The translations under genes and the position numbers were made by a program. A stretch of 64,000 nt of DNA from the IMG/VR virus record IMGVR_UViG_3300047560_000921, positions 124,001 to 188,000 of that record. One strand, 5' to 3'. Every line of letters starts with the position of its first letter. The first letter of the stretch is position 1. Below the pieces are notes generated by a model that worked only from the letters and a program-made list of their open reading frames with translations, ran no database searches and had not been told where the DNA came from. Below, piece after piece: positions 2-16,241 of the stretch.

Positions 2-616
2 AACAATGTCTGGACAAATAGCTTCTTCCCATTTCTCGCCACTAGCACTTAGTTTAGCACTAACACTGAATGTCACAAAGCGACTTTGCTTTTCGCCTAG
101 TGCAGGTTGTTGCCAAGCATTTAAGAAGTCGCGGAATCCTGGCTGTAGCTTTTGAGTGCCGTTAGTTTCAAAAGTAATGTTTCTAAGATTGTGCATCTTA
201 GGATTGCTAATTAGTTCTTCGTACGCACGTTGCCAACCTAGTAACGGTTCGCCACCTGTAATAACTAGATGCACATCATTGCCGTTGTCCTGTAGCCAAT
301 CGCCACTAGGGCAAATTGCTCGCATAGAATCAACTAGCTCTTCTGTAGTGTATGTTGGACTTAGTTCTTTAAATGCAGGATGCCAACTTGCATAACTGTC
401 ACAACCAGTATTAACTAGTGGTAGCTCTTCAAATGTGTTGTACATGTGTACGACTTGTGCTACATCGTCTGCTTCGGTACTCTTCTCGCCTGGCTTGCAT
501 CCAAACCCTGCACAAGTAAAGTTACAACCAAATGTACGCAAGAACACACTAGGTACACCAACAAAGCGACCCTCGCCTTGCAAACTATAAAATTTCTCAG
601 ATACCTTGATCTTCAT
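2..616 (-). CDS. queE: 7-carboxy-7-deazaguanine synthase QueE-like radical SAM protein (5' part; runs off the left edge, absent from the ORF track)
   Basis: Manual translation: MKIKVSEKFYSLQGEGRFVGVPSVFLRTFGCNFTC...CDSYASW...HLVITGGEPLL. SLQGEG, FLRxxGCN and ITGGEP are QueE hallmarks; FolE and a QueD-like gene are in the same operon. Confidence 0.85.
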   Translation of the reverse strand, partial: MKIKVSEKFYSLQGEGRFVGVPSVFLRTFGCNFTCAGFGCKPGEKSTEADDVAQVVHMYNTFEELPLVNTGCDSYASWHPAFKELSPTYTTEELVDSMRAICPSGDWLQDNGNDVHLVITGGEPLLGWQRAYEELISNPKMHNLRNITFETNGTQKLQPGFRDFLNAWQQPALGEKQSRFVTFSVSAKLSASGEKWEEAICPDIV

Positions 617-998
617 AATACTTCCATTTCCATCCTAATCGTTTCAAATCGTTTTCGATTTCTTCTTTAACTTGACCTTCGTTGGCAAACGTTCTGCCTT
701 CGTCGCCCATTTCGTCGCCGTCATGATCCGCATCACGAATGCCACTACAGTAATAGTCTAAGTAGTCTTCGTCGCGCTTGCCCAGACCCGCAACAAAGCC
801 ACCTGCCCAACGCCAACTGCAACTCCATTCGTTGTTACCAGTTAATACAGGCAGGAATTCTGTTTCTTTGTACCAAATAATGTTGCACAATGCCGCATAT
901 AAGTTTTGTGCATATATCCTGTCGTGAATTATTTTACCAACAACAACGGGGTCGTTGGTAATGTCGTCGCTTAAACTAACGTGTTCTTCAAGGTCCAT
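597..998 (-). CDS. hypothetical phage protein
   Basis: 133-aa ORF in operon orientation, directly downstream of a sigma70 promoter. Confidence 0.7.
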   Translation of the reverse strand: MDLEEHVSLSDDITNDPVVVGKIIHDRIYAQNLYAALCNIIWYKETEFLPVLTGNNEWSCSWRWAGGFVAGLGKRDEDYLDYYCSGIRDADHDGDEMGDEGRTFANEGQVKEEIENDLKRLGWKWKYYEDQGI

Positions 999-1003
999 GT
1001 CGT

Positions 1004-1032
1004 ATTATAACTTATAATGTCTTTTGCGTCAA
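1004..1032 (-). promoter_or_regulatory. sigma70-type promoter
   Basis: TTGACG-N17-TATAAT on the minus strand just upstream of ATG 998. Confidence 0.75.
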
Positions 1033-1604
1033 GTCCACATTTTCTTACAAGCATCGATGATTTGTTGGTTCCGGATAAAAGCCCTATCCACTAATCCAAT
1101 TTGTTTATCAAACCATTCTGCGCCAACACTAGCACTAGTAGGCGTAGGAATACTGATTTTGGCAGTACTGTCGGGACCTTCTCTTACGATACCAATGTTA
1201 TGCTTGTGCAATAGCCTGACCATTTTGTCGTTGTAGCTCAAGCAATGCATATAGACCCAATTGTAATTTCTATTCTGGCACCAGCGTAAAGCAAACAGTA
1301 ACAAGTCACTGCCAGCGCCGTGTCGCTGATACTTCTTATCGATGCTTAGGCCAATCTCGGCTTCTTCGTCGTTGTTAATTGCAATGTGACAAATACCAGC
1401 AATGTTGCCTTCAATGTCTTTAACTGCAATAATTGTGTCAACGTCTTTGGCCGCCCACTCATCAATCATTTTGTCAATCATGTATTCGGTAGCATGGTAA
1501 CTAAAGCGACATGTTAGACTATCTGGATCTAAGCTCTTTAAATGCTTGCGATAAATTTCCCACTTGTCTGTTGTTAAGACAAATGGGTGTGTTAAGTTAG
1601 GCAT
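1029..1604 (-). CDS. GNAT family acetyltransferase
   Basis: AEIGLSIDKKYQRHGAGSDLL acetyl-CoA motif A; MHCLSYNDKMVRL. Confidence 0.8.
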   Translation of the reverse strand: MPNLTHPFVLTTDKWEIYRKHLKSLDPDSLTCRFSYHATEYMIDKMIDEWAAKDVDTIIAVKDIEGNIAGICHIAINNDEEAEIGLSIDKKYQRHGAGSDLLLFALRWCQNRNYNWVYMHCLSYNDKMVRLLHKHNIGIVREGPDSTAKISIPTPTSASVGAEWFDKQIGLVDRAFIRNQQIIDACKKMWT

Positions 1605-1824
1605 TGGCTAGTACCGAGGCAACTGACTTCATTTCTTCTGGGTTTAGAAAAAACTCGTAAGTGCTTTCGTTGATTTGTTCGCCTTTGTCGTTAAACTCTT
1701 CGCGAACAAAGTAAACAGCTTTAAGGTTAGATGGACGTAGTACGTCATTGACCTTAACAGTCATTTTGAAACTAGGTGTGTCAGTAATAACTGCTTGTCT
1801 TGTGTTTAGGTTAAAAGTTGTCAT
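1597..1824 (-). CDS. hypothetical protein
   Basis: 75-aa ORF overlapping both neighbours by a few bases. Confidence 0.65.
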   Translation of the reverse strand: MTTFNLNTRQAVITDTPSFKMTVKVNDVLRPSNLKAVYFVREEFNDKGEQINESTYEFFLNPEEMKSVASVLANA

Positions 1825-2249
1825 TTCTCTGCCTTCTTGTAATTTCCTTTTGACGGGATTACATGTCTAACGCCGCCAGTAGGATCCTCCATATCACCGT
1901 GATATCTAGGAATAAGGTGTACGTGAGGCCAATCAACAGTTTGGCCCGCCGCCTTACCGTAGTTAAGTCCAATGTTAAAGCCGTCCCATTCGCCGTTCTT
2001 AACACGTTCTTTACCGTGGTCGATTGCATCTTCAAATGCATTGTTTAAAACTCTTGTGTTGTTATATTTTGGGACAAACAACAAATGTCCGTAGTTAACA
2101 GGGTACTTGTCTCTGTATACAGCAACGTGAAAGTCTTCCCACACTAACTCTGTCCATGGTGCGGTGCTATCTTCTTTACTGTCTGGTATCCCTGGAAAAA
2201 TCTTTTCGTCACGCATTTTTAATTTCTCTAAATCTTTCAAGAAACGCAT
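1821..2249 (-). CDS. HIT family nucleotide hydrolase
   Basis: DKYPVNYGHLLFVPK; GFNIGLNYGKAAGQTVDWPHVHLIPR (HxHxx HIT motif). Confidence 0.9.
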   Translation of the reverse strand: MRFLKDLEKLKMRDEKIFPGIPDSKEDSTAPWTELVWEDFHVAVYRDKYPVNYGHLLFVPKYNNTRVLNNAFEDAIDHGKERVKNGEWDGFNIGLNYGKAAGQTVDWPHVHLIPRYHGDMEDPTGGVRHVIPSKGNYKKAEK

Positions 2250-2391
2250 CGATTAAACATTCATACATTTTTTCAGTGCGTTCGTTGGAGTAGGTTACCC
2301 ATACTCCTGCATCATTTTCGTAGACCATTTCAACTTTGAACGACTCAAAGTTTGATCCTGACCATCTACTACCTGGATTTACTCTATTCAT
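2209..2391 (-). CDS. hypothetical protein
   Basis: Likely start ATG 2391 (TAATG coupling with the PRTase stop). Confidence 0.6.
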   Translation of the reverse strand: MNRVNPGSRWSGSNFESFKVEMVYENDAGVWVTYSNERTEKMYECLIDAFLERFREIKNA

Positions 2392-2888
2392 TATTCCCAC
2401 CAATTTTCCCAAGGGAAGACTAACCACTTGTCTTCTTCTGCCTTGTTAACATAGCTAGCGGCGTAGTCAACACGTTTAAATTCGCTAGCTTCGTTGTTAA
2501 TTAAAACAGCAAAGCGAACATTTTCATGCCATACACCATTCCACGCTACATCATGTGGGAAACAGCCACTAGGCCAATCATTTTTAATCCATTCTAATGT
2601 TGCGCCACTATCATTAATATCGTCAACAATAAGAATATTCTTTCCTGCCAATGCATCTTCGGCCATCCATAAGTTTGACTCTGGACCAAGTTCACTGCCA
2701 TCGCGCAAACTAACGTTCAGTGTATGCATGGGAACCTGTAACCAATGACTTAACATAGTAGCAGGTACAAGCCCGCCGCGAGTTAAGCCAACAACATAGT
2801 CTGGACGCCATCTGGCAATGGTAATTTGTCTAGCAATGTTTGACACATAGCTTTTCAAAAGTTTATCGTCAATATATACTTTGTTCAT
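2391..2888 (-). CDS. type I phosphoribosyltransferase (xanthine/guanine PRT-like)
   Basis: VVGLTRGGLVPA and ILIVDDINDSGATL PRPP-binding motif. Confidence 0.9.
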   Translation of the reverse strand: MNKVYIDDKLLKSYVSNIARQITIARWRPDYVVGLTRGGLVPATMLSHWLQVPMHTLNVSLRDGSELGPESNLWMAEDALAGKNILIVDDINDSGATLEWIKNDWPSGCFPHDVAWNGVWHENVRFAVLINNEASEFKRVDYAASYVNKAEEDKWLVFPWENWWE

Positions 2889-3376
2889 TTAAGTCCTCTT
2901 AACATCCATTCGGCCAACATGTCTCGAATCTCGGGATATTTGTTCATTAAGTCTTCGTTGTTTGACATTGTCATAAACGCACGTTTAATTGCGTAAATGT
3001 CTTCCACCAATCTGTCCCAGTTAACAGTATGTTCTTTTGTTTTAAAAATAACCTGTTCGTCTTCTACATCTATTTGTAACTTGGCTTCCATATTAGTAAA
3101 GGTACCATTCCAACCAGCATTACTGCCTACAGCGCCAATGCCTACGTTGTAATTACTGCTCAATGTAGCAGTAGTAGTACCGCTGGCACCAATGCTAATG
3201 TAGGACGGAACTGTAACAGTGCCACTAGCCATGGTTGAATTTGTAATAGTAGAATTCAAAATGGCATCAATGTCTGCGCTATTAATTGTAATTGTATCCG
3301 TACTATTAATAGTGTACTCAGACTCGTCCTTCCAATCAAACTCCAAAGGAGTTAAATCATCTAATGGATGAGTCAT
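2885..3376 (-). CDS. hypothetical protein (Ser/Thr-rich middle)
   Basis: 163-aa ORF tightly packed in the operon. Confidence 0.65.
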   Translation of the reverse strand: MTHPLDDLTPLEFDWKDESEYTINSTDTITINSADIDAILNSTITNSTMASGTVTVPSYISIGASGTTTATLSSNYNVGIGAVGSNAGWNGTFTNMEAKLQIDVEDEQVIFKTKEHTVNWDRLVEDIYAIKRAFMTMSNNEDLMNKYPEIRDMLAEWMLRGLK

Positions 3377-3378
3377 AG

Positions 3379-4074
3379 TTACCTCGGTGCAAACTCTTGT
3401 TGGAGTTTAATGTTATCAAAAAACTCTTTCTTTGTACCTTGGTCAGTGTTAAATGCACCTTTAAGCACAGTAGTCTGGGTTAACGAACTATGTGCCATAA
3501 TGCCGCGATTCTCACAGCAACCGTGTGTAGCTTGAATGTAAACGGCTACATTTTCCGAGTCTGTTGCTTTGGATATTTCTCGTGCAATGTCATTACAAAG
3601 TTCCTCTTGAAGAGTACCACGACGAGCACACCACTGAGCAATACGAGTATACTTACTAAGGCCAATAAGTTTGTTGGCAGCAATAATGCCAATATAAGCG
3701 ACACCACTAACAGGCTGGTGGTGATGGCTACACATAGAACGTAGTTCACTACGAACAACCAACATGCCTTCGTATCTATCTTCGCTATCATTCGGGAAAG
3801 CAGTCGCGTCTGGTGCTGGTTCATATCTACCTGCCATAATTTCGTTAAAGTACATTTTAGCTAGACGCTTCGCCGTACCGTGCGAGTTAGGATCGGTTTC
3901 GCGGTCAATAAGCAATGAGTCTAAGACTTGTTCAAATGCTTGAGTAGCTTCACTGATTAATGCTTCTTTTTGTTCCTCGTCAACATAATCGCTGATGTTG
4001 TCGCCTGCCCAGAAGCGTTTGCCCTGAGACTTCATTTGTTCTCTAATTACTTGCGATAAATTCTTTTCACTCAT
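3379..4074 (-). CDS. folE: GTP cyclohydrolase I
   Basis: SMCSHHHQP, IGLSKYTRI, LQEEL, HGCCENRG: FolE zinc/active-site motifs. Confidence 0.95.
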   Translation of the reverse strand: MSEKNLSQVIREQMKSQGKRFWAGDNISDYVDEEQKEALISEATQAFEQVLDSLLIDRETDPNSHGTAKRLAKMYFNEIMAGRYEPAPDATAFPNDSEDRYEGMLVVRSELRSMCSHHHQPVSGVAYIGIIAANKLIGLSKYTRIAQWCARRGTLQEELCNDIAREISKATDSENVAVYIQATHGCCENRGIMAHSSLTQTTVLKGAFNTDQGTKKEFFDNIKLQQEFAPR

Positions 4075-4552
4075 TGTTATTGTCCTTCAAAATGTTCTTT
4101 AAATTTTCAGCTTCGGCTACACGCTTACGTAAACTACTAGAGCTAAAGCTATGATCTCTACTGTTAAAAACTAACTGGATGTTCCTGGAGTGACACTCTA
4201 CTCGTCCAGTAAAGTTTTTATCTTCGTACTCGACTCCTAGTATTCTAACATCAATAGGCAGAATAAGCAAGAGGTCAACTAAGTCTTGCTCTGTGTTATA
4301 CACTACAATTTCGTCCACATAACGAACAGCGGCCAATTGGATTTGTCGTTCGACAATACTTTGGATTGGTGCGTTCTTCTCTGGACGATCCCATTGTGCA
4401 TTATTTTGGAGTCCTGCAATTAAGTAGTCACAATGATTCTTAGCTTCGGCCAGCATAGCAATGTGTCCGGCATGTAACATGTCAAACTGACTAAAGGTAA
4501 TACCAATCTTTAGTCCTTTATCTTTAAGCTCTCTGACCTTGCTAAAAATCAT
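4067..4552 (-). CDS. cytidylyltransferase (TagD/RfaE-II-like HxGH nucleotidyltransferase)
   Basis: FDMLHAGHIAML (HxGH), QSIVERQIQL, SSSSLRKR. Confidence 0.9.
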   Translation of the reverse strand: MIFSKVRELKDKGLKIGITFSQFDMLHAGHIAMLAEAKNHCDYLIAGLQNNAQWDRPEKNAPIQSIVERQIQLAAVRYVDEIVVYNTEQDLVDLLLILPIDVRILGVEYEDKNFTGRVECHSRNIQLVFNSRDHSFSSSSLRKRVAEAENLKNILKDNNNE

Positions 4553-5628
4553 TTAATGTTCCTTAATATACCTTCGGCAGTAAAGAAGTTGCTCTTAACA
4601 AGATCTTTAGTTTGTACAATAGTTTCGTAATGACCTTGATTCTTCAAAGCAGTCATTGTTGCTCTAATGTATTCGATCATACGATCCTTGTAAGTTAGAT
4701 AACTGTCAAAACTTTCTGTCCAACGAGAATCATACTTAAAGTCTTGCGGGTACATTTCTGTATAGCTAAGTCTGTTTGGCATCATAGGAAATGCGTTAAC
4801 ACACAATGCTTCGTAACAGCTAATGCCTAGAGTTTCTTGTAAGTTTGCACTAAACACAATTCTACTGCGACCAAGTAGTTCATGATATTCTTTCTTGGTC
4901 AATTGTTGTTCTTGTGCTACTACCCATTGGTACTCTGGCATTGCCGCCGCTAAGTCTTTAAAGATATCTAATTGTTTCTCTGGAGCAATACGATGTGGGA
5001 ACAGTATAATGTCTTCCTTAGGAATGTCTTTAAACGGAACTAACGTTTCGTCTAAGTATTCCATTGGCCAACCACTGCGTACAATTTTACCTGTGTGCAG
5101 TTGTTCCTTAACCCACCACTCTGCACCATCTGCAAAAACTTCTGCAAACAGTTTGATATGGAAGTCTGTAGCAAAGTAGTTATGGTCAACAGCACTAAAG
5201 AAACTGATCTCTGCATGACGTACCCACTTGGCATCGCCGATTAAGCGTCCTAAGAAGTCTTGTGGGTCATAGCTACCAGCGTGCCACAATGCGTGAATAG
5301 TTACAGGAATCTGCAACAGTTCACTCATGTACTTTAAGTTTATGATACCAGGGTGCCAAGCATCAGTAAAGATAAAGTGATCGCCGGCACGAACGGCTCC
5401 GTCACAAAATAACCTGCCCATTTGCTCAACTTGAGCAGACTTATAGATATTAGTCCCGCCAAAATTAAGAAAGGCGCCAGGAGTAGTGGCACTAGGAATG
5501 TCCGTAGGACCAGAGATAATTTGAACATTGTGACCTGCCTTTTGTAAGAGATCAGGTACATGGGTCTTCCATTGGCCCGTGTACCTTGTTTCAACGCTTT
5601 CTAAATCAACTAGAAAAACGTTCGCCAT
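4549..5628 (-). CDS. GT-B fold glycosyltransferase (GT4-like)
   Basis: FPHRIAPEKQ and SANLQETLGISCYEAL (E-x7-E GT4-type motif); start at ATG 5628 by TAATG coupling. Confidence 0.8.
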   Translation of the reverse strand: MANVFLVDLESVETRYTGQWKTHVPDLLQKAGHNVQIISGPTDIPSATTPGAFLNFGGTNIYKSAQVEQMGRLFCDGAVRAGDHFIFTDAWHPGIINLKYMSELLQIPVTIHALWHAGSYDPQDFLGRLIGDAKWVRHAEISFFSAVDHNYFATDFHIKLFAEVFADGAEWWVKEQLHTGKIVRSGWPMEYLDETLVPFKDIPKEDIILFPHRIAPEKQLDIFKDLAAAMPEYQWVVAQEQQLTKKEYHELLGRSRIVFSANLQETLGISCYEALCVNAFPMMPNRLSYTEMYPQDFKYDSRWTESFDSYLTYKDRMIEYIRATMTALKNQGHYETIVQTKDLVKSNFFTAEGILRNIK

Positions 5629-5939
5629 TACTTCTTCCACGAATCAGGAACTGCCACATGTGGTCGATTCCATGCACTCTTGTAAACACCAACGTGGATC
5701 TTGAGCTTCTTAGGACTGCGATCCTCGGTTAGTTGAATCACTGCATCAAATGTTACAGAGTTCTCTTTGTATTGTTCTTCTGGCAGGTCATAACCGTAAA
5801 TCAAACGGTCTTTCTGCAAGTCACGCAAGTATGCGTGGAACAAGTCTGCTACAAGGTAACCACTACCTTCGTACATGATACCATCGTATGGCTCTGCAAT
5901 TTTAAGTAGGTCATACTTAATATTGTCCATGCTCATCAT
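5628..5939 (-). CDS. hypothetical protein
   Basis: ORF between the QueD-like gene and the glycosyltransferase; start reassigned to MMSMD. Confidence 0.6.
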   Translation of the reverse strand: MMSMDNIKYDLLKIAEPYDGIMYEGSGYLVADLFHAYLRDLQKDRLIYGYDLPEEQYKENSVTFDAVIQLTEDRSPKKLKIHVGVYKSAWNRPHVAVPDSWKK

Positions 5940-5955
5940 GGGTCTAATCATTGGC

Positions 5956-6321
5956 TTAGTATTCTGTATATGCGCCATTTTCGTCGTCCTCGGAAATATC
6001 GATCCGGACACTGCGTCCTGGATACTTGGATGAAATTTGTTTGTACAAGTCTTCTGACATCATTTCGCAACTCTTAAAGTCTAGTTGCAATGTGCCATCT
6101 TTGTATAAGTTCTCTAGCCAGCGTTTAAACTGGATGAACTCAATATCCCTGTCATCGTGCGTTACACTAATGTAAACTTTGAAATGGAAGATATGACGAT
6201 GTGGGTAGCCAAGAAAGCTAACATCGTATTCGTCTCCTGTTGCAAGGTTAGGGTCCGTTAGTGCCGCTGGGTATTTGTGAATACCTTCTTTTTGAAATTT
6301 TACGTAAATCCACTTTTGCAT
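5956..6321 (-). CDS. queD: QueD-like 6-carboxytetrahydropterin synthase (T-fold)
   Basis: EGIH...PHRHIFH metal-binding His cluster, SCEM, C-terminal SEDDENGAYTEY; size 121 aa; folE/queE context. Confidence 0.7.
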   Translation of the reverse strand: MQKWIYVKFQKEGIHKYPAALTDPNLATGDEYDVSFLGYPHRHIFHFKVYISVTHDDRDIEFIQFKRWLENLYKDGTLQLDFKSCEMMSEDLYKQISSKYPGRSVRIDISEDDENGAYTEY

Positions 6322-6323
6322 GG

Positions 6324-6842
6324 TTACTCCTTAATTGGCGTGTCGCCAACATAATCTTTCCAGTCAGTGTAGACTGCTCTGGACTTTAGTGTTTCCAATG
6401 GATGGCACCAAACACCTGGGTTACTGTGTCCCCAAGTAGTGTCATCAATCTTCAACGTTGCGTTGTAATTGTACAATTTAATGTAAGGCAACTTAACGCT
6501 AATCATAGGAATGAATGTAAAGAATTCATTCCAACCTTCTTCATGAATGTCGTTGGCAAACTCAACGCCAAAGTCCAATGTAACCCAATAGCCCTTTTGT
6601 AGAAGTGGAGTGATCATAGCATCCCATTTGCGCCAATCTTCTTGACTCTTGGGTTGAAAACTTTGACTAGTTCCAAAATACAAATGTCTTAGGTTGTTGT
6701 CTGTGGCGTGCTTGATAATTTCTTCAATTGGTTGAACACCCACAACGAATAAAGTCTTTTCATCCTTCATTGCTGTGTGTTCGACTTCTGTACCAACAAA
6801 GTAAATTACTTGCTGACGACCTTGTGTATCAAGTTCAAGCAT
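6324..6842 (-). CDS. conserved hypothetical phage protein
   Basis: 172-aa ORF in the operon; no recognised motif. Confidence 0.7.
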   Translation of the reverse strand: MLELDTQGRQQVIYFVGTEVEHTAMKDEKTLFVVGVQPIEEIIKHATDNNLRHLYFGTSQSFQPKSQEDWRKWDAMITPLLQKGYWVTLDFGVEFANDIHEEGWNEFFTFIPMISVKLPYIKLYNYNATLKIDDTTWGHSNPGVWCHPLETLKSRAVYTDWKDYVGDTPIKE

Positions 6843-7740
6843 TGTTGTTCCATTTAATGTACCCTCTGGAATATCCAGCGGGACGATTTAATCCGTCAGT
6901 AAAAGCCTGTTGCCACTCTGTATCTCTATTATACTCCTTAGACCAGAAACTGTCAACACTAATGTCGCCATTAGTTATCCAGTACTCTGCATCCTTCATA
7001 CACTGATAAAACTTATCAGTTCTAGGACTAGGAAATATAATAGTGCAAGCCTTCCACAACAATGATGCAAATGTAGTTTCGATTTTCTTTTCTACGCCCA
7101 TAACAACTAATGCTTCGTTGGCAAGCATAGCGTTAACAAACACATCGTCATGTGGACTCAAATCAATTACAACATCAAATAATCCGTCGTATTGTGGACT
7201 GAGTGCATTGCCCCATAGTTCTTTGTTACTGTTACCGCATACAGTGATTTCAAAATCCAAATGATTCAACAGTATAGTATTGTAAGCTACCCAAGCTAAA
7301 AAGCCACTGCCTAGAATTAAGAGTCTTTTTCCGGGGCCGCTTCGTTCGGCAATTTCGCGTATGGGTTGTTGTACCACGTTAATGCCGCAAGCCACTGGCT
7401 CCAAAATATATCGTGGTAAAGGCTCTGGAACCTTAACATACTCTCTAGAACGAACATTGTATTCGTCTGCGTATCCTGGTTCTCCTCTTGTTGCGACATA
7501 GTCACCTACCTTTACATCGTTAACGAATTCACCAACTTCGAATACTTGACCCAAGCCTTCATGTCCGTGCATGTGTTCAGGAAGTGGACCAAATCCACCT
7601 GTCATCATATCAATGTCACTGCGACATACGCCGGTCATTACAGACCGTACGGCAATCTCATCTGGTTTACACAAAGGCCTTTCGTAAGTTGTTTCAATAA
7701 ACTCTCCGTTGCCTTTGGTAACTAAATGCCTTGTAATCAT
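6835..7740 (-). CDS. zinc-type medium-chain (sugar/polyol) dehydrogenase
   Basis: GVCRSD, GHEGLG (GHE motif), EPVACG, ILGSGFL Rossmann motif; start 7740 by ATGA overlap. Confidence 0.85.
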   Translation of the reverse strand: MITRHLVTKGNGEFIETTYERPLCKPDEIAVRSVMTGVCRSDIDMMTGGFGPLPEHMHGHEGLGQVFEVGEFVNDVKVGDYVATRGEPGYADEYNVRSREYVKVPEPLPRYILEPVACGINVVQQPIREIAERSGPGKRLLILGSGFLAWVAYNTILLNHLDFEITVCGNSNKELWGNALSPQYDGLFDVVIDLSPHDDVFVNAMLANEALVVMGVEKKIETTFASLLWKACTIIFPSPRTDKFYQCMKDAEYWITNGDISVDSFWSKEYNRDTEWQQAFTDGLNRPAGYSRGYIKWNNNA

Positions 7741-8615
7741 AAATCTTCTATTTGTTGGTGAATCCAAATGTCCTGTGTCAGTTGATTCTGCCAGAACGTG
7801 TCATTGTCTTTGTTTGTAATAGCATGTGACACCATGGCCTTATATGCACTTTCAGGACACAAGCCTAACGAATGTTTTACAGCACTGAATTTCATTCCAA
7901 AGCTAATATAAACATCGTCGGCTAAATCGTCTTTCCAGTTAGCACTTAAGATCCATTTAGTGTTGCCATTTTGATACTCTAACGTGCAGTAATCATCTAC
8001 ATTGTAAATGCCTTGCTTGTTTACAGTACCATAATCAGTATCAACAATACTATTTAGGTCATGGCGTTGTTCTGCCACTTTTGTTAGTGTAGTACCTTTA
8101 GTGATATCTGTCAATGCACAATAGTAACTTAACATGTGAGGAATTAAGTCTCTACTAACGCCACCAAATGCTTGCTCTTTATTTGTAAACCAACTACCCG
8201 GATTGGGTACTCTGTTTTTGCTATTCCAAACTACTCTGACAACTTCACATTGGTCTGCTAGTTGTTTAAAGTGGGTAATAGTGTCTCTATATTGATTATT
8301 CTTAACCATCATGAATCTAGTATTGGGAAAGTCTGCAACTAACTTAGCCCAAACATTATGATCCTTGACTCCGGGTTTCTCTACAAATACAATGCCTGCA
8401 TGTGGTGCAACTTCTCTGGCAATTTGTTCGTGTGTATAATTTGGAGTACAAATATTCACAGTATCAAAATAACCATGGGCGGCAACAGCGTATCCGATAT
8501 GTGTAAAGTCAGCATCACGAACTGGGTCAACGGTTACTACTTGATGACCCAGTTGTTCTAATACTGTGCGATAGACAGCGTTACCAAAGCCCATGCCCAC
8601 TATTAAACTTTTCAT
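7737..8615 (-). CDS. Gfo/Idh/MocA family oxidoreductase
   Basis: IVGMGFG Rossmann motif, ICTPNYTH, FVEKP, GGVSRDLIPH. Confidence 0.9.
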   Translation of the reverse strand: MKSLIVGMGFGNAVYRTVLEQLGHQVVTVDPVRDADFTHIGYAVAAHGYFDTVNICTPNYTHEQIAREVAPHAGIVFVEKPGVKDHNVWAKLVADFPNTRFMMVKNNQYRDTITHFKQLADQCEVVRVVWNSKNRVPNPGSWFTNKEQAFGGVSRDLIPHMLSYYCALTDITKGTTLTKVAEQRHDLNSIVDTDYGTVNKQGIYNVDDYCTLEYQNGNTKWILSANWKDDLADDVYISFGMKFSAVKHSLGLCPESAYKAMVSHAITNKDNDTFWQNQLTQDIWIHQQIEDL

Positions 8616-10144
8616 TACAGCATACCTTCTAACATTTGTTCGCCCTGTTCAACAGTTTCAGGATCGTCAAACATGTTACTGTCATTGTCCTTACCTGCAT
8701 CTTCAGTTTCAAACAAACTGTTAAATCCTGCAACAGTACTCTTAAGAGTCTTAGTGCCGTTAAAGTTAGCTAACAAATCTTGTGCTTTGTCTAACTCAGT
8801 AAACGGAGTTTGACTTGTAAACACACGATTAACAAGTTCGTTCATGTAAATTACATTACGTGGAACCCACTCGCTAAACTCATCTGCACCTTTCTTAACC
8901 TTGTGCCATGCACTTGGATCTGGTTGATGCATTGCACAAGCCGCATCGTTTAATGCGTTAGCACGTTGTACACTTTCAATGTGTTGGTAAACGTTGTGAC
9001 CCATCATTAGGAAGTAAGAGAAACTATCCCAAGATGTTCGACCTTCTTTACCTAACTTGTTTAGCATACCAGGAGCATACCAACACAAGTCACCCATTGT
9101 CATACGTTCGCCCACTGGACTGTTCCATGGCCAAGCAACTTTACTACCGCTCAATTTCTTATTATCGATAGCCTTAGTCATCAAGTAACTAAAACGATCA
9201 TTTTGATGAACGTGTTGTGTGTATACTTGTCCGTATGCAGTTGCCAAGAATGGACTTGCACAGTCAAATGTAACTTTCATGTTAGGGTTAACATGTTCAC
9301 GGATGTTACGTTGAACGGCCGTTAACAAGCAGGCAAGTTCAAGTTTACTAGTTCCCAGGAAGTGGATTACGTCTCGTCCAGGTTCTAGTAGTTTTTCGTC
9401 ACGTAGTTTAATTAGGCGTCGCAACATAAGGTCTACGTCCTTCATGTTGTTACCCCCCATGGCCCAACCTTCGAATGGATAATGCTTAACTGCATCATAC
9501 CAAATTTCTGCGTCAACGTTGTTACCGCCTTGTAGAACGTTTAGGAACTTAGTCTTGCCTTGGCGATGCTTTAAGAAGAAATCGTTGTTAAACAATGTTC
9601 CTTTTAAACAGTCGTTAAAGTCTTTAAGTCCTGTACGTGGTTGGTTAATAGGATTACTTGCCCATGTAGGTAAGTCAAGCACCATACTATAATCAGCAGT
9701 AAACTCTAACCAGTTAAGGATAGCCATACGAGTTTTATCTGCTTCGCCGATGTAGCCAGCATCGCCTTGCTTTTCCCAGAAGTGCTTCCAGTCAAAGTTA
9801 ATAACACCTTTACCAATCTGGAATCCACCAGAGTCTCCTAAGATAAAAGTATTAGGCTTGTCACGTTGTTGTACCATGCTTTCTTGCACCCAAGACTTTT
9901 TCAAATCTAATTGTGCATGTCCGGCCGAGTACAGTGCGTGACTATAATGAAAGTATGCCTTTTCCTTATTAAGGAAGTTCATACCTTCGATACCATTCTC
10001 AAACTCAGAAGGAATACGACTAGCTTCAATGTATTCACCTTCTTGTTGTTTAGAGATAAAGGTATTGTAGAATCCGCTAATACTAGGCAAGAATATTGCA
10101 TAGTCTTTATTGCGCGGATCTAAGTCCACTGTTGTTTTACTCAT
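8615..10144 (-). CDS. tRNA-guanine transglycosylase fold protein (TGT/DpdA-like deazaguanine transglycosylase)
   Basis: ILGDSGGFQI, MVLDLP, GWAMGG, IHFLGT, TFDCASP (nucleophile-position Asp), GHNV; co-located with folE/queD/queE. Confidence 0.85.
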   Translation of the reverse strand: MSKTTVDLDPRNKDYAIFLPSISGFYNTFISKQQEGEYIEASRIPSEFENGIEGMNFLNKEKAYFHYSHALYSAGHAQLDLKKSWVQESMVQQRDKPNTFILGDSGGFQIGKGVINFDWKHFWEKQGDAGYIGEADKTRMAILNWLEFTADYSMVLDLPTWASNPINQPRTGLKDFNDCLKGTLFNNDFFLKHRQGKTKFLNVLQGGNNVDAEIWYDAVKHYPFEGWAMGGNNMKDVDLMLRRLIKLRDEKLLEPGRDVIHFLGTSKLELACLLTAVQRNIREHVNPNMKVTFDCASPFLATAYGQVYTQHVHQNDRFSYLMTKAIDNKKLSGSKVAWPWNSPVGERMTMGDLCWYAPGMLNKLGKEGRTSWDSFSYFLMMGHNVYQHIESVQRANALNDAACAMHQPDPSAWHKVKKGADEFSEWVPRNVIYMNELVNRVFTSQTPFTELDKAQDLLANFNGTKTLKSTVAGFNSLFETEDAGKDNDSNMFDDPETVEQGEQMLEGML

Positions 10145-10378: not shown

Positions 10379-11119
10379 TTAACGAGTCATTGCTGGAAGG
10401 ATGTAATCGTATGTACCAATGCCACTATCGACGCGGATCATACATGCACCCTGGTTGCTGAAGTTAACAGCACAAATACCACCCATGCCCAACTTAAGAA
10501 TGTTTAGGAACTGTGTAAGTGGGAAGCTAAGGTCACCTTTGATAGTGCCGCCTACATTGTTTGCAAATGTACGCTTACCAAAGTGACTGCCGCCGTTGGC
10601 GCTACCTAGTTCAAACACTAAGTTACCATTGTCTGTGCGAACAGTAAATGTTGGCTCAATGCTAGAATAAATGCTAGCAGCCTGTGCCAAGTCTTGTACT
10701 TTGGCTTTTGTAGGTTCAAATGTCACGTCCCATGTAGCACCTTTGAACTTAACAGTTTGGATCTGTGTATCGATAACTTCTTTGCTCATCAATCGATACT
10801 TGTCCGAGTTACCGTCTGGGTCTTTGAACACTAGTGTTTCAGGCAAGTCTACACCATTGCGGTTAGTCTTAACTACTTCTACAGTTGTACCATCTTTGGC
10901 ATACAAGTTACAAACACCGTTCAAGAAGCCTAGGTTACCCATACCAAATTCGCCGACAAAGTCGCCTTCTGGTTTGTGTAGTTTGGCATTCAGGATAACA
11001 GTCTTGTCCTGGTCAATGGCCGCAATTTGTGTTTCTTCTGCGGTTCCTGTTACCTTAAGACTGTCAATAATGCCAAGTCCGCTGGTATGTCTAACGATAT
11101 CTAATACGATGTCTTTCAT
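10379..11119 (-). CDS. DNA polymerase sliding clamp (T4 gp45-like)
   Basis: 246 aa, beta-rich, ends YDYILPA, directly downstream of the DNA polymerase gene. Confidence 0.65.
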   Translation of the reverse strand: MKDIVLDIVRHTSGLGIIDSLKVTGTAEETQIAAIDQDKTVILNAKLHKPEGDFVGEFGMGNLGFLNGVCNLYAKDGTTVEVVKTNRNGVDLPETLVFKDPDGNSDKYRLMSKEVIDTQIQTVKFKGATWDVTFEPTKAKVQDLAQAASIYSSIEPTFTVRTDNGNLVFELGSANGGSHFGKRTFANNVGGTIKGDLSFPLTQFLNILKLGMGGICAVNFSNQGACMIRVDSGIGTYDYILPAMTR

Positions 11120-11139: not shown

Positions 11140-11168
11140 AGTATATAGGTTTATTTAGGTCATGTCAA
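11140..11168 (-). promoter_or_regulatory. sigma70-type promoter
   Basis: TTGACA-N17-TATACT upstream of the clamp/TGT operon. Confidence 0.8.
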
Positions 11169-11171
11169 CTA

Positions 11172-13817
11172 TTATTCAAATAATAGGTTGAATGTGTTTT
11201 TCATTTTTGTTGACTGTAAGTCCCATCCTAGAACGCCTAGTAGGTTGTCAATCTTGTTATCAATAATAGTTTCTTCCATTGCGTCTTCATCAAACGGAAG
11301 TTCTTTGAACCACATTGGAAGTCTCTGTTCGTCGGTTGGATAAGCGATACTGGTCATGTTTAATGGATTGCTTTTCAATTTGCAAACAACAACTTTCATA
11401 CCGTCAACTGCATCCATACTAAATTGGTCGCCGTGCATCTTTTTAATGCGATTCCAATTGATAGCCGCCATGGCATGTCCAACTCCACATTTACCAGTTT
11501 TGTTAAACACAGCAGTATGTTGAGTCAAATTGTTAACACGCTTCGGTGTACCTTTTTCCCAAGCAGCCTTGGCTTTAAAGCCTTTTCTAAAGTCCAAGAT
11601 TCTGTCTAGGATCTTTTGACGTTCTTCTCCAGTTAGCAACATAAGCAAAATCTCTTCAAGAAACTTTTGCATAAATTCTGGAGTGTCTGCTCGCTTAAGG
11701 TCGAGACCCATAGCTTTAACTTCGCCCGGCTCTCCGTCCAAGTCCTTGCGCTTGCCTTCCTTATCATAGATAAGAACAGCATAACGCTTCTTGGTCATGT
11801 AAATGCCTTTACTAGCAACAACTTCTCGACCAGCTTTAATAGGAGCCGCATATACGCCTGGCACATTAAACGCACGATTCATAAATGAAGGGAATGTATC
11901 GTTAACTTCGTTACTTACAGTATCGTATAGTTCAACAATCTTGTCCTTACTCCATTCAATCTCGCCACGTTCGGCTTCGCCTTTAAACACCGGCCATGCG
12001 CTAAAGTAAACAGAGTCAGTATCACCGTAGATAATAGTTTCACCTACGTGATTGTATTCTCCTGTAAACATAGCATTAACTTGTGCCGCCATGTGTCTAG
12101 CAATGCAACGACCTGTAAGAGTAGTTGATTGTCCTAGTCGTTGGTCGAAGAACCTGCTACCTGCGTTAAGCAAAGCGCCGTATGCAGAGTTCAAGTTAAT
12201 CTTCTTAACTAGCTGTCGCTTGTCCCAGAACTCAAACTCTTTTTCGTTGTCAATACATGCCTTGGCTTTCTTCTGCAAGTCTTTACGCTCACTGTACCAA
12301 CGCTCTAACAAGCCTGGAATAACACCCTTCTCGGTAAAGTTAAAGATAGTACCGTTGGCACTAATCATTAAGTTTTGTCCGCTAAGGAAAATCATTTCAT
12401 ACGCTTGCTTTCCGCTAACTTGTTCACTGCGACCATTTTCCCAGTCAATGATAACGTCTGTGCCAACATCTTGGTTCATTACAACTTCGTATTCCATTGT
12501 GGCAAATCTGCCGTCCCAACAGTCAGCAAAGCTCTTGCCAGCATCCATTCCATCGCGGATCATTTTCTTTGTCATATCAAGACGCAGTTGTCCTACGATG
12601 GTTTCTGGACTCATGTTAAGCGCACGAATAACAGAAGGATACAGTGAGTTCAAGTCCATTGAGCCAATCCATTCGTGAATACCTTTTTTGGGGTAAGCAA
12701 CGTATGCACCAGCGGCCTGTGTTTCTGCGTGATCCCTTGTACGGTCCGGAACAATAAGTCCACGATTGTGTGCTTCTCTGATAACAGCTTGGTCAGTTAC
12801 AGCAACAGCGCCCATGGTAGTTTGGAACAATACACAGTTAGCATGAGCCAACACGTTTACTAAGTCAATGTACTGTAGCTTTTTATCCAGCTTGACTAAC
12901 AGCATAACGTCTTGCCTGTTATACGCAATAAACTTTTCAAAGTCATTGTTGTATAACTGATCTAGTGTACCTTCGTAGTGAACTTTAGTTTCACCTAGTT
13001 CATATTCTCCCACATAGTCTAGGCGGTATGTATGAAGTTCATGATAAGTGTACTTGCGGTATAGTTCAAGATAGTCTAAGTGTACACGACCGATTAAGTC
13101 GTAGGTAACAGCAGTCTTGCCGTACTTTTCAAATTCACGTGCCTTAGGCTTTTGTCCCCACAAGCAGAAACGCTTGCAGTGGTCCTGCCCCATTACTCGA
13201 GCAATACGATTAAACGTATATGGAATGTCAAAGCCTTCACTGTTCCAGCCGCTAAGAATGTCAGCATCGTCGACTAGTTGAATAAACATATCCAACATTT
13301 CTTCTTCTGTGCTACACAGAACTGTATTGTCGAATCTGCTACATATATCTTCGGCTTGTGCCACAGACAATGTGTCTGGCTTTAAACAAAGAGTAATAAG
13401 TCTATCTAACCAGCTTAGATATAATGTGATACTGGTAATGTTGTTAAAAGGATCGCTGGGATCAGCAAAACCTTTTTCTTTATCGAAGTTAACTTCAATG
13501 TCGAAGAAGCATACGTTTAGTTCAGGAGTATCACCGTTTGGATACTCATCTTCTAAACAACGGAACACAGGCTTGATATCGCTTTCATACAGTTTCTTAC
13601 CACTGTAGATGCGCTTCTCTTTGTCAAAGGCCTTGTGATTGTTAACAGCTACTTTGCTCAGTGGCTGTCCATAGATGCTTTTGTATTTGCCCTTGGCGTC
13701 AGGATAATAAAATACATACTTGGCAGGAATGTCTTTGAACTTCCTTTGTCCGTTAATACGCTCGACAACTTGAATTAAGTCTTTTTGTTTATTGTAGAAT
13801 GCGTCTACATAACTCAT
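11172..13817 (-). CDS. family B DNA polymerase (T4 gp43-like)
   Basis: Exonuclease motifs FFDIEV, GWNSEGFDIPY, YNRQD; polymerase motifs MDLNSLYPS, KINLNSAYG, YGDTDS, KKRY. Confidence 0.97.
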   Translation of the reverse strand: MSYVDAFYNKQKDLIQVVERINGQRKFKDIPAKYVFYYPDAKGKYKSIYGQPLSKVAVNNHKAFDKEKRIYSGKKLYESDIKPVFRCLEDEYPNGDTPELNVCFFDIEVNFDKEKGFADPSDPFNNITSITLYLSWLDRLITLCLKPDTLSVAQAEDICSRFDNTVLCSTEEEMLDMFIQLVDDADILSGWNSEGFDIPYTFNRIARVMGQDHCKRFCLWGQKPKAREFEKYGKTAVTYDLIGRVHLDYLELYRKYTYHELHTYRLDYVGEYELGETKVHYEGTLDQLYNNDFEKFIAYNRQDVMLLVKLDKKLQYIDLVNVLAHANCVLFQTTMGAVAVTDQAVIREAHNRGLIVPDRTRDHAETQAAGAYVAYPKKGIHEWIGSMDLNSLYPSVIRALNMSPETIVGQLRLDMTKKMIRDGMDAGKSFADCWDGRFATMEYEVVMNQDVGTDVIIDWENGRSEQVSGKQAYEMIFLSGQNLMISANGTIFNFTEKGVIPGLLERWYSERKDLQKKAKACIDNEKEFEFWDKRQLVKKINLNSAYGALLNAGSRFFDQRLGQSTTLTGRCIARHMAAQVNAMFTGEYNHVGETIIYGDTDSVYFSAWPVFKGEAERGEIEWSKDKIVELYDTVSNEVNDTFPSFMNRAFNVPGVYAAPIKAGREVVASKGIYMTKKRYAVLIYDKEGKRKDLDGEPGEVKAMGLDLKRADTPEFMQKFLEEILLMLLTGEERQKILDRILDFRKGFKAKAAWEKGTPKRVNNLTQHTAVFNKTGKCGVGHAMAAINWNRIKKMHGDQFSMDAVDGMKVVVCKLKSNPLNMTSIAYPTDEQRLPMWFKELPFDEDAMEETIIDNKIDNLLGVLGWDLQSTKMKNTFNLLFE

Positions 13818-14116
13818 TTAATAATCATCCTAATTAGCCCAATAGAATCTATTGTAGTTAGTAGCAAGTAATTTGCTAGCATACCGAAACTACCTCTAGT
13901 CCAAGCCGCCCACGCATATAACGCACAACCACATATCCATATTGGATACAGTATTATAAGCGGTGGGTTGGGTACTGTCAACATCATTACAATGCTATTG
14001 CCAATACTAATGGTCCAGGCCAGAACTTCGATGTAAAATCGAAATGGCCATTCATGGTAGTCCTCTTTGATCCACGCCCATGTGGGCGCGAACCAAGATT
14101 TCAGTTTATTGATCAA
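13814..14116 (-). CDS. small membrane protein (about 3 TM segments)
   Basis: 100 aa with hydrophobic segments; overlaps both neighbours by 4 nt. Confidence 0.65.
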   Translation of the reverse strand: MINKLKSWFAPTWAWIKEDYHEWPFRFYIEVLAWTISIGNSIVMMLTVPNPPLIILYPIWICGCALYAWAAWTRGSFGMLANYLLLTTIDSIGLIRMIIK

Positions 14117-15062: not shown

Positions 15063-16241
15063 TTACCAAATATAGGGAAACAGTTGCTGGCTGTTTGTTT
15101 TCCTGATTGCGTCTAAGTCCGTTAAGTACTTACGGGTAGATTCTATTCCATTGCTGTGAGTTTTAAGCAAATTATCCACTAAATCAGGCATTTCAGAAGT
15201 TAAATTATGCTCTTTGAGCCATTGTCTGTGGAACTGAGTCATACGCCTTGCTTCGTCTCTATGTTCCATGGGCAGTAAATCAGCTTTTAAATTCTCTGGG
15301 AAACTGATAGTGTTGTATTGATAATTGTGTATGCCCGTAGCGGTGTAGATAGCACGTTCAATCTTGTCCAGGTCCAGGATGTTTAATATGCTAATGCTAG
15401 GGGTAATTTTAATGTCAATGTGTGGGCATTGGTTCTTAACCTGTGTTAAGTTTTCTAGTATTTGCTTCCAGCTGGCACCCCGACGAATGTAATCAAATCG
15501 GTCCCAGACGTTGTCTATGCTAACTAGCATACTGATATTGCTAAAGTTATTCCATAAGTCCAAGACATTCTTTTTCTTGTAGTTCAAGTTGGTTAAGTTT
15601 GTTATATAGGATATGTTAACTTGCTTTTTGTTTGCGGCAAAGTATTCTAGAATTTCATAGTGCTGATCCGTTACTAGTGGTTCCCCTCCGGCAAAGGTAA
15701 CGTTTTCTACGTCATCTAAATACTCTTCTTTTAACTGTTCCATAATGTCTAAACTTAATATTCTATCATGTCCGCTACTGCGTCCTAATTTAATCCAATC
15801 GCTATGCCATGTGCTACTAAACGTTGGGCCACAACTTACACAGGCCAAATTGCAAACGTTACTGAATCTAATGTCAAGATATTTAAGTTTAAAATCAGTA
15901 AAGTCTGTGGGGTGATATTTAAAGCTATTGATACGCATACTGTCCATACCAACAGCTTCTTGCTCATAGCATTTATAGCAAGTGTCTACAAGCTCACCCG
16001 CCAGCATTTTTTGTTTTATTTCTTTGAACTTGTCACCATTAACTATGTCTATGATTTTAGTTTGGTTTAAGTTACCAATGGGTTTAAGCGGATCACTCAA
16101 GCAACAAGGAAACGCTTTACCGTCGGGCCATGCATGTAAATGAACCCATGGTAAAGTGCAGATGCTTTTATTTGTAGTAGGATCTAAGGATCTCGTACCA
16201 CTCGGGGAAAGTGTCTTTAAAGCTCTGTTTACGATATTCAT
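15063..16241 (-). CDS. N-terminal twitch-domain radical SAM protein
   Basis: CTLPW..DGKAFPCC..CYKC twitch; CNLACVSC; FAGGEP. Confidence 0.9.
   Translation of the reverse strand: MNIVNRALKTLSPSGTRSLDPTTNKSICTLPWVHLHAWPDGKAFPCCLSDPLKPIGNLNQTKIIDIVNGDKFKEIKQKMLAGELVDTCYKCYEQEAVGMDSMRINSFKYHPTDFTDFKLKYLDIRFSNVCNLACVSCGPTFSSTWHSDWIKLGRSSGHDRILSLDIMEQLKEEYLDDVENVTFAGGEPLVTDQHYEILEYFAANKKQVNISYITNLTNLNYKKKNVLDLWNNFSNISMLVSIDNVWDRFDYIRRGASWKQILENLTQVKNQCPHIDIKITPSISILNILDLDKIERAIYTATGIHNYQYNTISFPENLKADLLPMEHRDEARRMTQFHRQWLKEHNLTSEMPDLVDNLLKTHSNGIESTRKYLTDLDAIRKTNSQQLFPYIW

Follow-up and report, generated by a model that had tools for sequence, protein, structure and literature searches.

A candidate glycosylated-deazaguanine DNA-modification module of a jumbo phage, with a transglycosylase-linked predicted glycosyltransferase

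Does a jumbo phage that carries genes for making a 7-deazaguanine base and exchanging it into DNA also attach a sugar to that base? The question is raised by a 64,000-nucleotide stretch (hereafter the window; positions 124,001 to 188,000 of the IMG/VR record IMGVR_UViG_3300047560_000921, a 231-kb contig). Here a tightly packed run of minus-strand genes at 2-10144 follows the genes for a family B DNA polymerase (11172..13817, minus strand; a Pfam match, 51% identical to the Phosso and 47% to the Atu_ph07 polymerase) and a clamp-like protein (10379..11119, minus strand; phrog_12062, with a Phosso homolog annotated as a sliding clamp). An initial annotation listed in this run a TGT/DpdA-like protein, a Gfo/Idh/MocA oxidoreductase, a Zn-type dehydrogenase, a QueD-like protein, a GT4-like glycosyltransferase, a cytidylyltransferase, FolE and QueE, and suggested that an activated, redox-tailored sugar or polyol is attached to the deazaguanine. 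The observation holds: all the named genes are present in this place and on this strand, separated by small gaps or overlaps, and the same order recurs in more than 100 independent viral contigs, indicating that the arrangement is not due to chance. The interpretation is only partly supported—the gene calls were essentially right and the link between sugar chemistry and the deazaguanine system is strengthened, but three aspects of it require correction, as detailed below.

We first asked whether the run encodes a DNA transglycosylase. The 509-aa product of the gene at 8615..10144 (minus strand) is not recognized by the Pfam TGT model (PF01702) and has no other Pfam, PHROG, NCBIfam or PDB-sequence hit; hence, its assignment rests on predicted fold and motifs. 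Its AlphaFold model (pLDDT 87) recovers Zymomonas mobilis TGT structures as all of the top 50 Foldseek PDB hits (probability 1.0, E down to 4.5e-9, TM about 0.5). It possesses the three catalytic motifs GDSGGFQ (D104), LD (D157) and FDC (D294), whose aspartates are invariant in 31 homologs; D294 aligns with the aspartate of the MFDC motif of Escherichia coli Tgt, and the DSGG motif aligns with those of the ACP17 and X1 DpdA proteins. Profile-profile comparison with ACP17 gp123 gives a probability of 85%, while that with phiST DpdA3 (CGPG_00065) gives only 46%, with E 2e-4 over 88 columns, and no tblastn hit was obtained to phiST or Campylobacter phages. We describe it as a long-form DpdA-like transglycosylase; it has more than 7900 metagenomic homologs. 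It is accompanied by a conserved protein of 6324..6842 (minus strand), here termed u172, which has no family or PDB match but was found by tblastn in 58/58 loci with the glycosyltransferase described below, and is homologous to ACP17 gp122, which sits next to the ACP17 DpdA.

The second issue is which base might be made. FolE (3379..4074, minus strand) is confirmed as GTP cyclohydrolase I (Pfam 136.8 bits against a cut-off of 27, 7e-40; NCBIfam FolE 2e-41). The gene at 2..616 (minus strand) is the 5' two-thirds of a gene for a putative QueE, the 7-carboxy-7-deazaguanine (CDG) synthase; the 205 of 290 residues in the window match five NCBIfam QueE models at 6e-11 to 6e-9, below their equivalog cut-offs, and the gene is complete on the source contig. 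The PA5oct and ACP17 homologs are annotated as QueE. The protein of 5956..6321 (minus strand), taken for a QueD-like enzyme in the initial annotation, has no Pfam hit but matches a QueD profile with a probability of 95.7% (E 1e-8). However, in place of the QueD motif CxxxHGH it shows L37-x3-H41-R-H43-x-F45, invariant in 13 homologs, which equals the signature LxxxHRHxF of DpdL, a QueD paralog proposed to act as a CDG decarboxylase (PMC10516641). It also retrieves the DpdL prototypes in tblastn searches, with 53% identity to that of ACP17 (E 2e-34) and 31% to that of phiST (CGPG_00067; E 6e-7). No QueC, QueF or canonical QueD was found in the window. The "QueD" is thus DpdL by motif and homology, and with no QueC the base is probably 7-deazaguanine or a CDG derivative rather than preQ0 or preQ1, which removes the obvious attachment point for a sugar.

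The third issue is the sugar chemistry itself. The 363-aa protein of 4549..5640 (minus strand) scores only 17.3 bits against the Pfam Glycos_transf_1 model (cut-off 26.4; its ACP17 homolog scores 21.1). Nevertheless, its AlphaFold2 model (pLDDT 81) is predicted to adopt the two-Rossmann-domain GT-B fold of retaining GT4 enzymes, with Foldseek hits to BshA, MshA, PimA and glycogen synthase (probability 1.0, TM 0.5-0.64), and its best viral hit is ACP17 gp124 (TM 0.83-0.87). The EX7E motif of the C-terminal domain (E269-x7-E277) is invariant in 32 sequences, as are many donor-side residues. No similarity to known DNA glucosyltransferases was seen in these structural searches, and no signal peptide or membrane context was noted.

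It had been stipulated beforehand that occurrence of the sugar genes independently of the que/dpdA genes would speak against the proposed link. For the glycosyltransferase, no such independence was found: in IMG/VR, 58/58 GT4 loci carry the transglycosylase and 39/39 transglycosylase loci carry the GT4, and the pair occurs in 16/16 genome loci. The cultured phages PA5oct, ACP17, X1, BUDD, BCSR5 and Phosso have the GT4 beside DpdL, with this adjacency spanning five host genera. In the chromosomes of Pelagibacterium, Devosia and Azospirillum, the unit takes the form of transglycosylase, YhhQ-like transporter and GT4.

Only the GT4 is a core gene among the sugar enzymes; by contrast, the others, which the initial annotation had grouped with it, are variable accessories. 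The Zn-dependent medium-chain dehydrogenase (6835..7767, minus strand; ADH_N 44 bits, 2.7e-11; phrog_2640) is present in 22/45 complete modules. The putative GFO/IDH/MocA-type NAD(P) sugar oxidoreductase (7737..8615, minus strand) is present in 21/45, nearly always with the dehydrogenase; it has weak Pfam and NCBIfam hits (Pfam 21.3 against a cut-off of 24 bits) but shows an N-terminal Rossmann motif and the EKP motif. The cytidylyltransferase-like protein (4067..4552, minus strand) is present in only 6/45; it matches CTP_transf_like (PF01467; 41.4 bits against 21, 2e-10) and has an HxGH motif in the form LHAGH, while RfaE domain II (8e-18) and TagD (4e-14) both score below their cut-offs; it may be a cytidylyl/adenylyltransferase-like sugar-phosphate or polyol-phosphate nucleotidyltransferase. 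Relatives may also carry a UDP-sugar dehydrogenase or an SDR, and 30/45 complete modules have at least one nucleotide-sugar enzyme inside the module, in different combinations—the pattern expected if the sugar is under diversifying pressure.

The run further encodes proteins that had not been listed. These include a type I purine phosphoribosyltransferase (PRTase; 2391..2888, minus strand; Pribosyltran 2e-14, xanthine PRT 4e-13), which is XPRT/HGPRT-like, present in 34/45 modules and homologous to PA5oct EST35_0321; a HIT-family nucleotide hydrolase/transferase (1821..2249, minus strand; 4e-8), present in 20/45; and an accessory GNAT acetyltransferase (1029..1604, minus strand; Acetyltransf_1 1e-11) with weak similarity to the sugar N-acyltransferase WecD. 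The PRTase, HIT and, in relatives, MazG (12/45) suggest that a nucleotide-level branch also exists. Three remaining proteins, all on the minus strand, have homologs in L004, a compared locus: the small basic u127 (5628..6011; 71% identical, present in 6-13 relatives), u163 (2885..3376; no family hit) and u133 (597..998; 48% identical). A perfect sigma-70 consensus promoter (12/12 match) lies at 6928..6956 (minus strand) inside the 3' end of the dehydrogenase gene, ahead of u172, and similar sites precede the polymerase (13953-13981), the clamp-like gene (11140-11168) and u133 (1004-1032).

Taken together, the reading we favor, although held at no better than even confidence, is that the run is a replication-linked DNA hypermodification module that yields a glycosylated 7-deazaguanine-type base with a phage-specific sugar. 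In this view, FolE, a QueD encoded elsewhere or supplied by the host, and QueE would convert GTP to CDG; DpdL would convert CDG to 7-deazaguanine, by the published proposal through decarboxylation; the DpdA-like transglycosylase, probably with u172, would exchange guanine in phage DNA for this base; and the GT4 would transfer a sugar from a nucleotide sugar onto the deazaguanine, either in DNA or just before insertion. Most relatives would use a host nucleotide sugar, whereas this phage would additionally make or remodel its own donor with the nucleotidyltransferase, the GFO/IDH/MocA oxidoreductase, the Zn-dehydrogenase and perhaps the GNAT. The PRTase would most simply recycle the excised guanine or feed the deaza-base into nucleotides. 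Our analysis establishes the predicted folds, motifs, homologies and gene linkage, while every chemical step, including base exchange in DNA and the decarboxylase activity of DpdL, as well as the DNA target of the GT4 and the nature of its donor, acceptor and sugar, is inferred from sequence and comparison alone.

Some published observations are consistent with this view. PA5oct, which has the module, resists restriction enzymes at G-containing sites and is attacked by nucleases that sense hypermodified DNA (PMC12191111). The dpdA and dpdL genes of ACP17 alone gave no 7-deazaguanine (dDG) in E. coli DNA, and the authors suspected missing partners (PMC10516641). A glycosyltransferase acting on a 7-deazapurine base exists in huimycin biosynthesis. 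On the other hand, if DpdL, whose function remains a proposal, yields plain 7-deazaguanine, there is no hydroxyl or carboxyl at C7, leaving the acceptor atom unclear. Moreover, phiST has DpdL but no GT4, and its DNA holds unglycosylated dDG; GT4 enzymes usually act on small molecules, lipids or proteins, and the present one showed no similarity to known DNA glucosyltransferases; the PRTase, HIT and MazG genes hint at nucleotide-level chemistry; and there are no mass-spectrometric data for any phage carrying the GT4.

The alternative that survives best, though we consider it rather doubtful, is that the DNA carries a plain, already known deazaguanine (dDG, dCDG or dADG), and that the GT4 and sugar-nucleotide enzymes act on a free metabolite, a protein or an envelope component, being merely cotranscribed with early replication genes. 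The dDG of phiST, the lack of an obvious acceptor atom and the small-molecule, lipid or glucan acceptors used by the nearest structural neighbors of the GT4 favor it. However, the linkage to the transglycosylase is 100% in both directions across deep divergence and in bacterial islands, the GT4 sits between the transglycosylase and DpdL/QueE in phages whose polymerases are only about 50% identical, and no signal peptide or membrane context was noted.

Less likely still is a nucleotide-level, tubercidin-like route, wherein the PRTase couples CDG or 7-deazaguanine to PRPP, DpdL decarboxylates the product, cellular or phage kinases and reductase make the dNTP for incorporation by the polymerase, and MazG/HIT trim the competing pool; the transglycosylase would then only complete or repair the replacement, with the GT4 acting on a nucleotide intermediate. 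Besides the frequencies of the PRTase, HIT and MazG given above, this is favored by the tubercidin pathway, which lacks QueC and combines CDG, a PF00156 PRTase and a decarboxylase, and by the P-loop kinase-like gene and MazG next to DpdL in phiST. Against it, the PRTase is absent from ACP17 and a quarter of the modules while the transglycosylase is universal, published work assigns all known phage deazaguanines to post-replicative DpdA insertion, and an XPRT-like enzyme is equally explained by salvage of the excised guanine.

Two further alternatives appear very unlikely. The GT4-fold protein could be a noncatalytic partner of the transglycosylase, for example for DNA loading, as DpdB is for the bacterial DpdA, given that the two genes are inseparable even where DpdL and QueE are absent; but this is countered by the invariance of the EX7E motif and donor-side residues and by the nucleotide-sugar enzymes clustering around it in two-thirds of the modules. 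Equally, a parallel pathway for a pterin glycoside, akin to the biopterin glucoside of cyanobacteria, would account for FolE, a T-fold PTPS/QueD homolog, reductases and a group-1 glycosyltransferase, which are the ingredients of pteridine glycoside synthesis, but DpdL lacks the catalytic Cys/Asp/His of PTPS and QueD, the GT4 tracks the transglycosylase (100%) better than FolE (37/45) and persists in bacterial islands with no FolE or DpdL, and the reductases are missing from half of the modules.

Among described systems, the closest are the DpdA3/DpdL dDG system of Cellulophaga phage phiST and the ACP17 cluster (Cui et al. 2023, PMC10516641), which likewise combine FolE, QueE, a DpdL with the LxxxHRHxF motif and a divergent DpdA-type transglycosylase, lack QueC and lie next to the DNA polymerase. 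The present module differs in its long (about 500 aa) transglycosylase, at best remotely related to that of phiST, and in its obligatory GT4 and u172; that study does not mention a glycosyltransferase, although ACP17 gp124 is one by our homology and predicted-structure comparisons. The glucosylation of 5-hydroxymethylcytosine in T-even phages, and other phage glycosylations of pyrimidines, similarly follow base replacement or modification with a GT-B enzyme using a nucleotide sugar that varies between related phages, presumably for protection from restriction; here, however, the target would be a purine analog installed by base exchange, with no evident hydroxymethyl handle and no sequence or close structural relation to the T4 glucosyltransferases. 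In the huimycin/dapiramicin and tubercidin pathways of actinomycetes, a glycosyltransferase acts on a 7-deazapurine scaffold (huimycin HuiG), or CDG is used without QueC (tubercidin), but these produce soluble secondary metabolites from clusters lacking any nucleic-acid transglycosylase, whereas here a DpdA-like enzyme is the best-conserved gene and the cluster sits among replication genes. In bacterial Dpd restriction-modification islands, a TGT-family enzyme inserts a 7-deazaguanine into DNA, and a bacterial island version of the present pair exists with a YhhQ-like transporter and a resolvase; no DpdB or DpdC homologs were seen, and a GT4 is present instead. Finally, mannosyl- and galactosyl-queuosine of animal tRNA are glycosylated 7-deazaguanine derivatives in a nucleic acid (PMC12518689), but in RNA and with the sugar on the cyclopentenediol of queuosine, which this pathway cannot make as it has no QueC, QueF or QueA.

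All natural DNA glycosylations described so far are on pyrimidines, all eight described DNA deazaguanines carry only small C7 groups, and no paper we found describes a glycosylated deazaguanine in DNA. The module is very common in metagenomes, with more than 8000 protein clusters for each of the two key enzymes, and is present in phages that can be grown in the laboratory. The broadest reading, which we consider possible but somewhat less likely than not, is that a large, globally distributed clade of jumbo phages, together with cultured phages such as PA5oct, ACP17, X1, BCSR5 and Phosso, replaces guanine by a glycosylated 7-deazaguanine, with the sugar diversified between phages by swapping nucleotide-sugar tailoring genes, and that a related transglycosylase-transporter-GT4 island does the same in some alphaproteobacterial chromosomes. 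This would be the first sugar-bearing purine in any DNA, and a DNA transglycosylase with a partner glycosyltransferase could also be useful for site-directed DNA labeling. Such a base would add a new chemical class to those of DNA, and it could explain both why PA5oct-type phages are sensed as "hypermodified" and why ACP17 dpdA plus dpdL failed to give dDG in E. coli.

The deazaguanine module in window 2-10144 comprises seventeen co-directional minus-strand ORFs, separated by 2-30 nt or overlapping by 1-56 nt, which lie directly downstream of the genes for a family B DNA polymerase (11172-13817), a clamp-like protein (10379-11119) and a DUF465 protein. A megablast search with this region against 50,697 phage records returned nothing, but the polymerase is about 50% identical to those of the jumbo phages Phosso, Atu_ph07 and PA5oct. 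Scans with standard libraries identify FolE (3379-4074; 137 bits), a cytidylyltransferase-like enzyme (4067-4552) closest to RfaE domain II and TagD, a Zn-dependent dehydrogenase (ADH; 6835-7767), a weak GFO/IDH/MocA match (7737-8615), a type I purine phosphoribosyltransferase (PRTase; 2391-2888; xanthine PRT 4e-13), a HIT protein (1821-2249), a GNAT (1029-1604) and the N-terminal 205 residues of a predicted QueE (2-616), which is complete at 290 aa on the 231-kb IMG/VR contig (L174) to part of which the window is identical. In contrast, Pfam, PHROG, NCBIfam and PDB-sequence searches gave nothing for the transglycosylase, the unknown proteins u172 and u127, DpdL and several small ORFs. The conserved unknown u172 was compared with the Phosso "glycosylase" and with phiST CGPG_00066 and is neither of these; the latter (phiST locus L150, 8320-8799), described in the literature as unknown, instead matches the P-loop kinase family AAA_18 (E 9e-7). 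Isoelectric points were uninformative about DNA binding, because the whole proteome is acidic.

Three of the proteins required more than library scans. The 509-aa protein (8615-10144) has no family hit, but it has more than 7900 metagenomic homologs and carries the invariant motifs GDSGGFQ, LD and FDC, and its AlphaFold model (pLDDT 87) matches only tRNA-guanine transglycosylase structures at the top of the PDB search (prob 1.0, E 4.5e-9). The FDC aspartate aligns with the MFDC aspartate of Escherichia coli Tgt. The protein is remotely related to gp123 of Acidovorax phage ACP17 (prob 85%), and possibly, more weakly, to phiST DpdA3 (prob 46%); hence, on fold and motifs, it is a DpdA-type enzyme of a distinct long subfamily. 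The 363-aa protein (4549-5640) scores only 17 bits against Glycos_transf_1, but its predicted structure (pLDDT 81) is a GT-B fold closest to BshA, MshA, PimA and glycogen synthases, with an invariant E269-x7-E277 motif; its best viral structural match is ACP17 gp124 (TM 0.83-0.87). We initially considered the 121-aa QueD-like protein (5956-6321) to be a divergent QueD. Comparison with the single E. coli QueD sequence was weak (prob 6%), whereas a profile-profile comparison confirmed the homology (prob 95.7%). However, the protein has a leucine in place of the catalytic cysteine and the signature LxxxHRHxF, which is exactly that used by Cui et al. 2023 to define DpdL, the proposed CDG decarboxylase behind 2'-deoxy-7-deazaguanosine (dDG) in phiST. 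Consistent with this identification, it recovers ACP17 (53%) and phiST (31%) in tblastn searches. QueC, QueF, Gat-QueC and YhhQ (by tblastn) and a canonical QueD (by tblastn and HMM) were not found in the 64-kb window. A few relatives do have a canonical QueD within 10 kb, and ACP17, phiST and RHph_I1_18 have both QueD and DpdL.

To assess the linkage of these genes, we retrieved 80 IMG/VR loci with the GT4 profile and 80 with the transglycosylase profile. Of the GT4 loci with more than 7 kb upstream, 58/58 carry the transglycosylase, u172 and DpdL, and of those with more than 8 kb downstream, 41/41 carry QueE. Conversely, of the transglycosylase loci with at least 7 kb downstream, 39/39 carry a GT4 homolog 2.3-7.0 kb away; eight of these had appeared to lack the GT4 by tblastn, but an HMM search found a divergent version in all of them. 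The pair is also present in all 16 hits in one-genome-per-species bacterial and archaeal assemblies, most of which are mis-binned phage contigs. In Pelagibacterium (loci L164 and L165), Devosia (L167) and Azospirillum (L166), however, the chromosomes carry a small island comprising a serine resolvase, two unknown genes, the long transglycosylase, a weak Vut_1/YhhQ-like transporter and the GT4, without DpdL or QueE, raising the possibility that it is a cellular DNA-modification or restriction-modification island. Among cultured phages, the GT4 lies beside DpdL in the PA5oct group, Phosso, ACP17, Xanthomonas X1/BUDD and Burkholderia BCSR5. The most compact version is that of ACP17 (locus L149, 7320-11211), with QueD, FolE, u172 (gp122), DpdA (gp123), GT4 (gp124), DpdL (gp125) and QueE (gp126), whereas the published heterologous test used only dpdA and dpdL. 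Both genes also occur outside this association: DpdL is found without the GT4 in phiST-like phages, RHph_I1_18, Ahp1 and others, and the transglycosylase without the GT4 in Vibrio phage 2.275.O (locus L003, 11923-18949). In the latter, the same transglycosylase family is followed by an Amidoligase_2-like gene, QueF, a YhhQ-like transporter, QueC, an amidotransferase and FolE, suggesting a different, amide-type decoration in that phage.

In 45 complete modules, the transglycosylase and the GT4 are each present in 45, DpdL and QueE each in 44, u172 in 37 (but in 58/58 GT4 loci by tblastn), FolE in 37, the PRTase in 34, HIT in 20 and MazG in 12. The sugar-nucleotide genes, on the other hand, vary: 15 modules have none, 16 have GFO and ADH with or without a short UDP-glucose/GDP-mannose-dehydrogenase-family gene, 7 have that dehydrogenase alone, 6 have the cytidylyltransferase-like gene and 2 have an SDR epimerase/dehydratase. 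The short dehydrogenase (260-307 aa) occurs in 18/45 modules (L015:12880-13671, L066:11065-11880, L041:11960-12883 and 15 further loci), lacks a recognizable C-terminal domain and varies in position, being found either after the GT4 or between the polymerase and the clamp. The window phage has GFO, ADH, the nucleotidyltransferase and a GNAT, but lacks the 253-aa SDR epimerase/dehydratase that its closest relatives, including the 90%-identical L007, encode between the transglycosylase and GFO (L007:11575-12336, L009:6048-6809). Four sigma-70 consensus promoters, two perfect (12/12) and two matching at 11/12, were detected on the minus strand, each just upstream of a gene start (13953-13981, 11140-11168, 6928-6956 and 1004-1032). 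One of the perfect matches (6928-6956) lies inside the 3' end of the ADH gene just ahead of u172, which fits GFO-ADH being an insertion upstream of an older u172-DpdL-GT4 unit. Beyond the module, seven consecutive radical-SAM proteins, the first with a SPASM domain, are encoded on the minus strand (15063-24222) immediately upstream of the lysozyme and polymerase genes, and the same run is present in L007 and in another relative, L004. Families matched in the remainder of the window (24000-64000), at the family level rather than by ORF, include ClpB-like and other AAA proteins, DnaJ, PhoH, UvdE, a ferritin-like protein, an AurF-like N-oxygenase, a fatty-acid desaturase, a methyltransferase and a clamp-loader subunit.

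The production of CDG via FolE, (QueD) and QueE is established biochemistry of these families. The action of DpdL on CDG and the insertion of the product into DNA by a DpdA-type enzyme follow the published proposal for phiST, where dDG fully replaces dG. The new element is the GT4. Its linkage to the transglycosylase, unbroken in the IMG/VR and genome loci sampled, its intact catalytic motif, the cloud of exchangeable nucleotide-sugar enzymes around it and its position among early replication genes together make a nucleotide-sugar-dependent decoration of the deazaguanine system the best reading. These linkages, motifs and homologies are observed directly, whereas the base exchange in DNA, the decarboxylation by DpdL and the glycosyl transfer, with its donor and acceptor, are inferred. 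Plain 7-deazaguanine has no hydroxyl, and the acceptor could be the CDG carboxylate before decarboxylation, N2 (as in huimycin-type N-glycosides), C7/C8 via a C-glycoside, or a nucleotide intermediate. Because the GT4 stays with the transglycosylase even where DpdL and QueE are missing, the acceptor is probably not specific to one C7 substituent. The PRTase is most simply a salvage enzyme for the excised guanine, which would return it to GTP, the pathway's own substrate.

Of the alternatives, the one that survives best, though we consider it doubtful, is that the DNA contains plain dDG while the GT4 works on a non-DNA acceptor. A pre-replicative nucleotide route appears less likely still, but is kept open by the tubercidin pathway, which combines CDG, a PF00156 PRTase and a decarboxylase with no QueC. 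Synthesis of a pterin glycoside and a non-catalytic partner role for the GT4 are both very unlikely.

The initial annotation had described a tightly packed minus-strand run in which sugar-activation, redox and transfer enzymes are interleaved with deazaguanine genes, and our analysis confirms this. Its inference that an activated, redox-tailored sugar or polyol is attached to the deazaguanine is partly supported and has been sharpened here. The module belongs to the 7-deazaguanine DNA-modification systems and is closest to the DpdA3/DpdL type, from which it differs by its long transglycosylase subfamily, by the obligatory GT4 and u172, and by the variable sugar-nucleotide genes. The paper that defined DpdL does not mention a glycosyltransferase, although ACP17, one of its test phages, encodes one between dpdA and dpdL, and full-text searches of an incomplete literature collection, which cannot prove absence, found no report of a glycosylated deazaguanine in DNA. 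A varying sugar is what an arms race with restriction and modification-sensing nucleases would produce. PA5oct DNA, whose base is chemically unidentified, resists enzymes cutting at G-containing sites and is also targeted by END nucleases that sense hypermodified DNA. If the glycosylated base is confirmed, it would be a new class of DNA modification.
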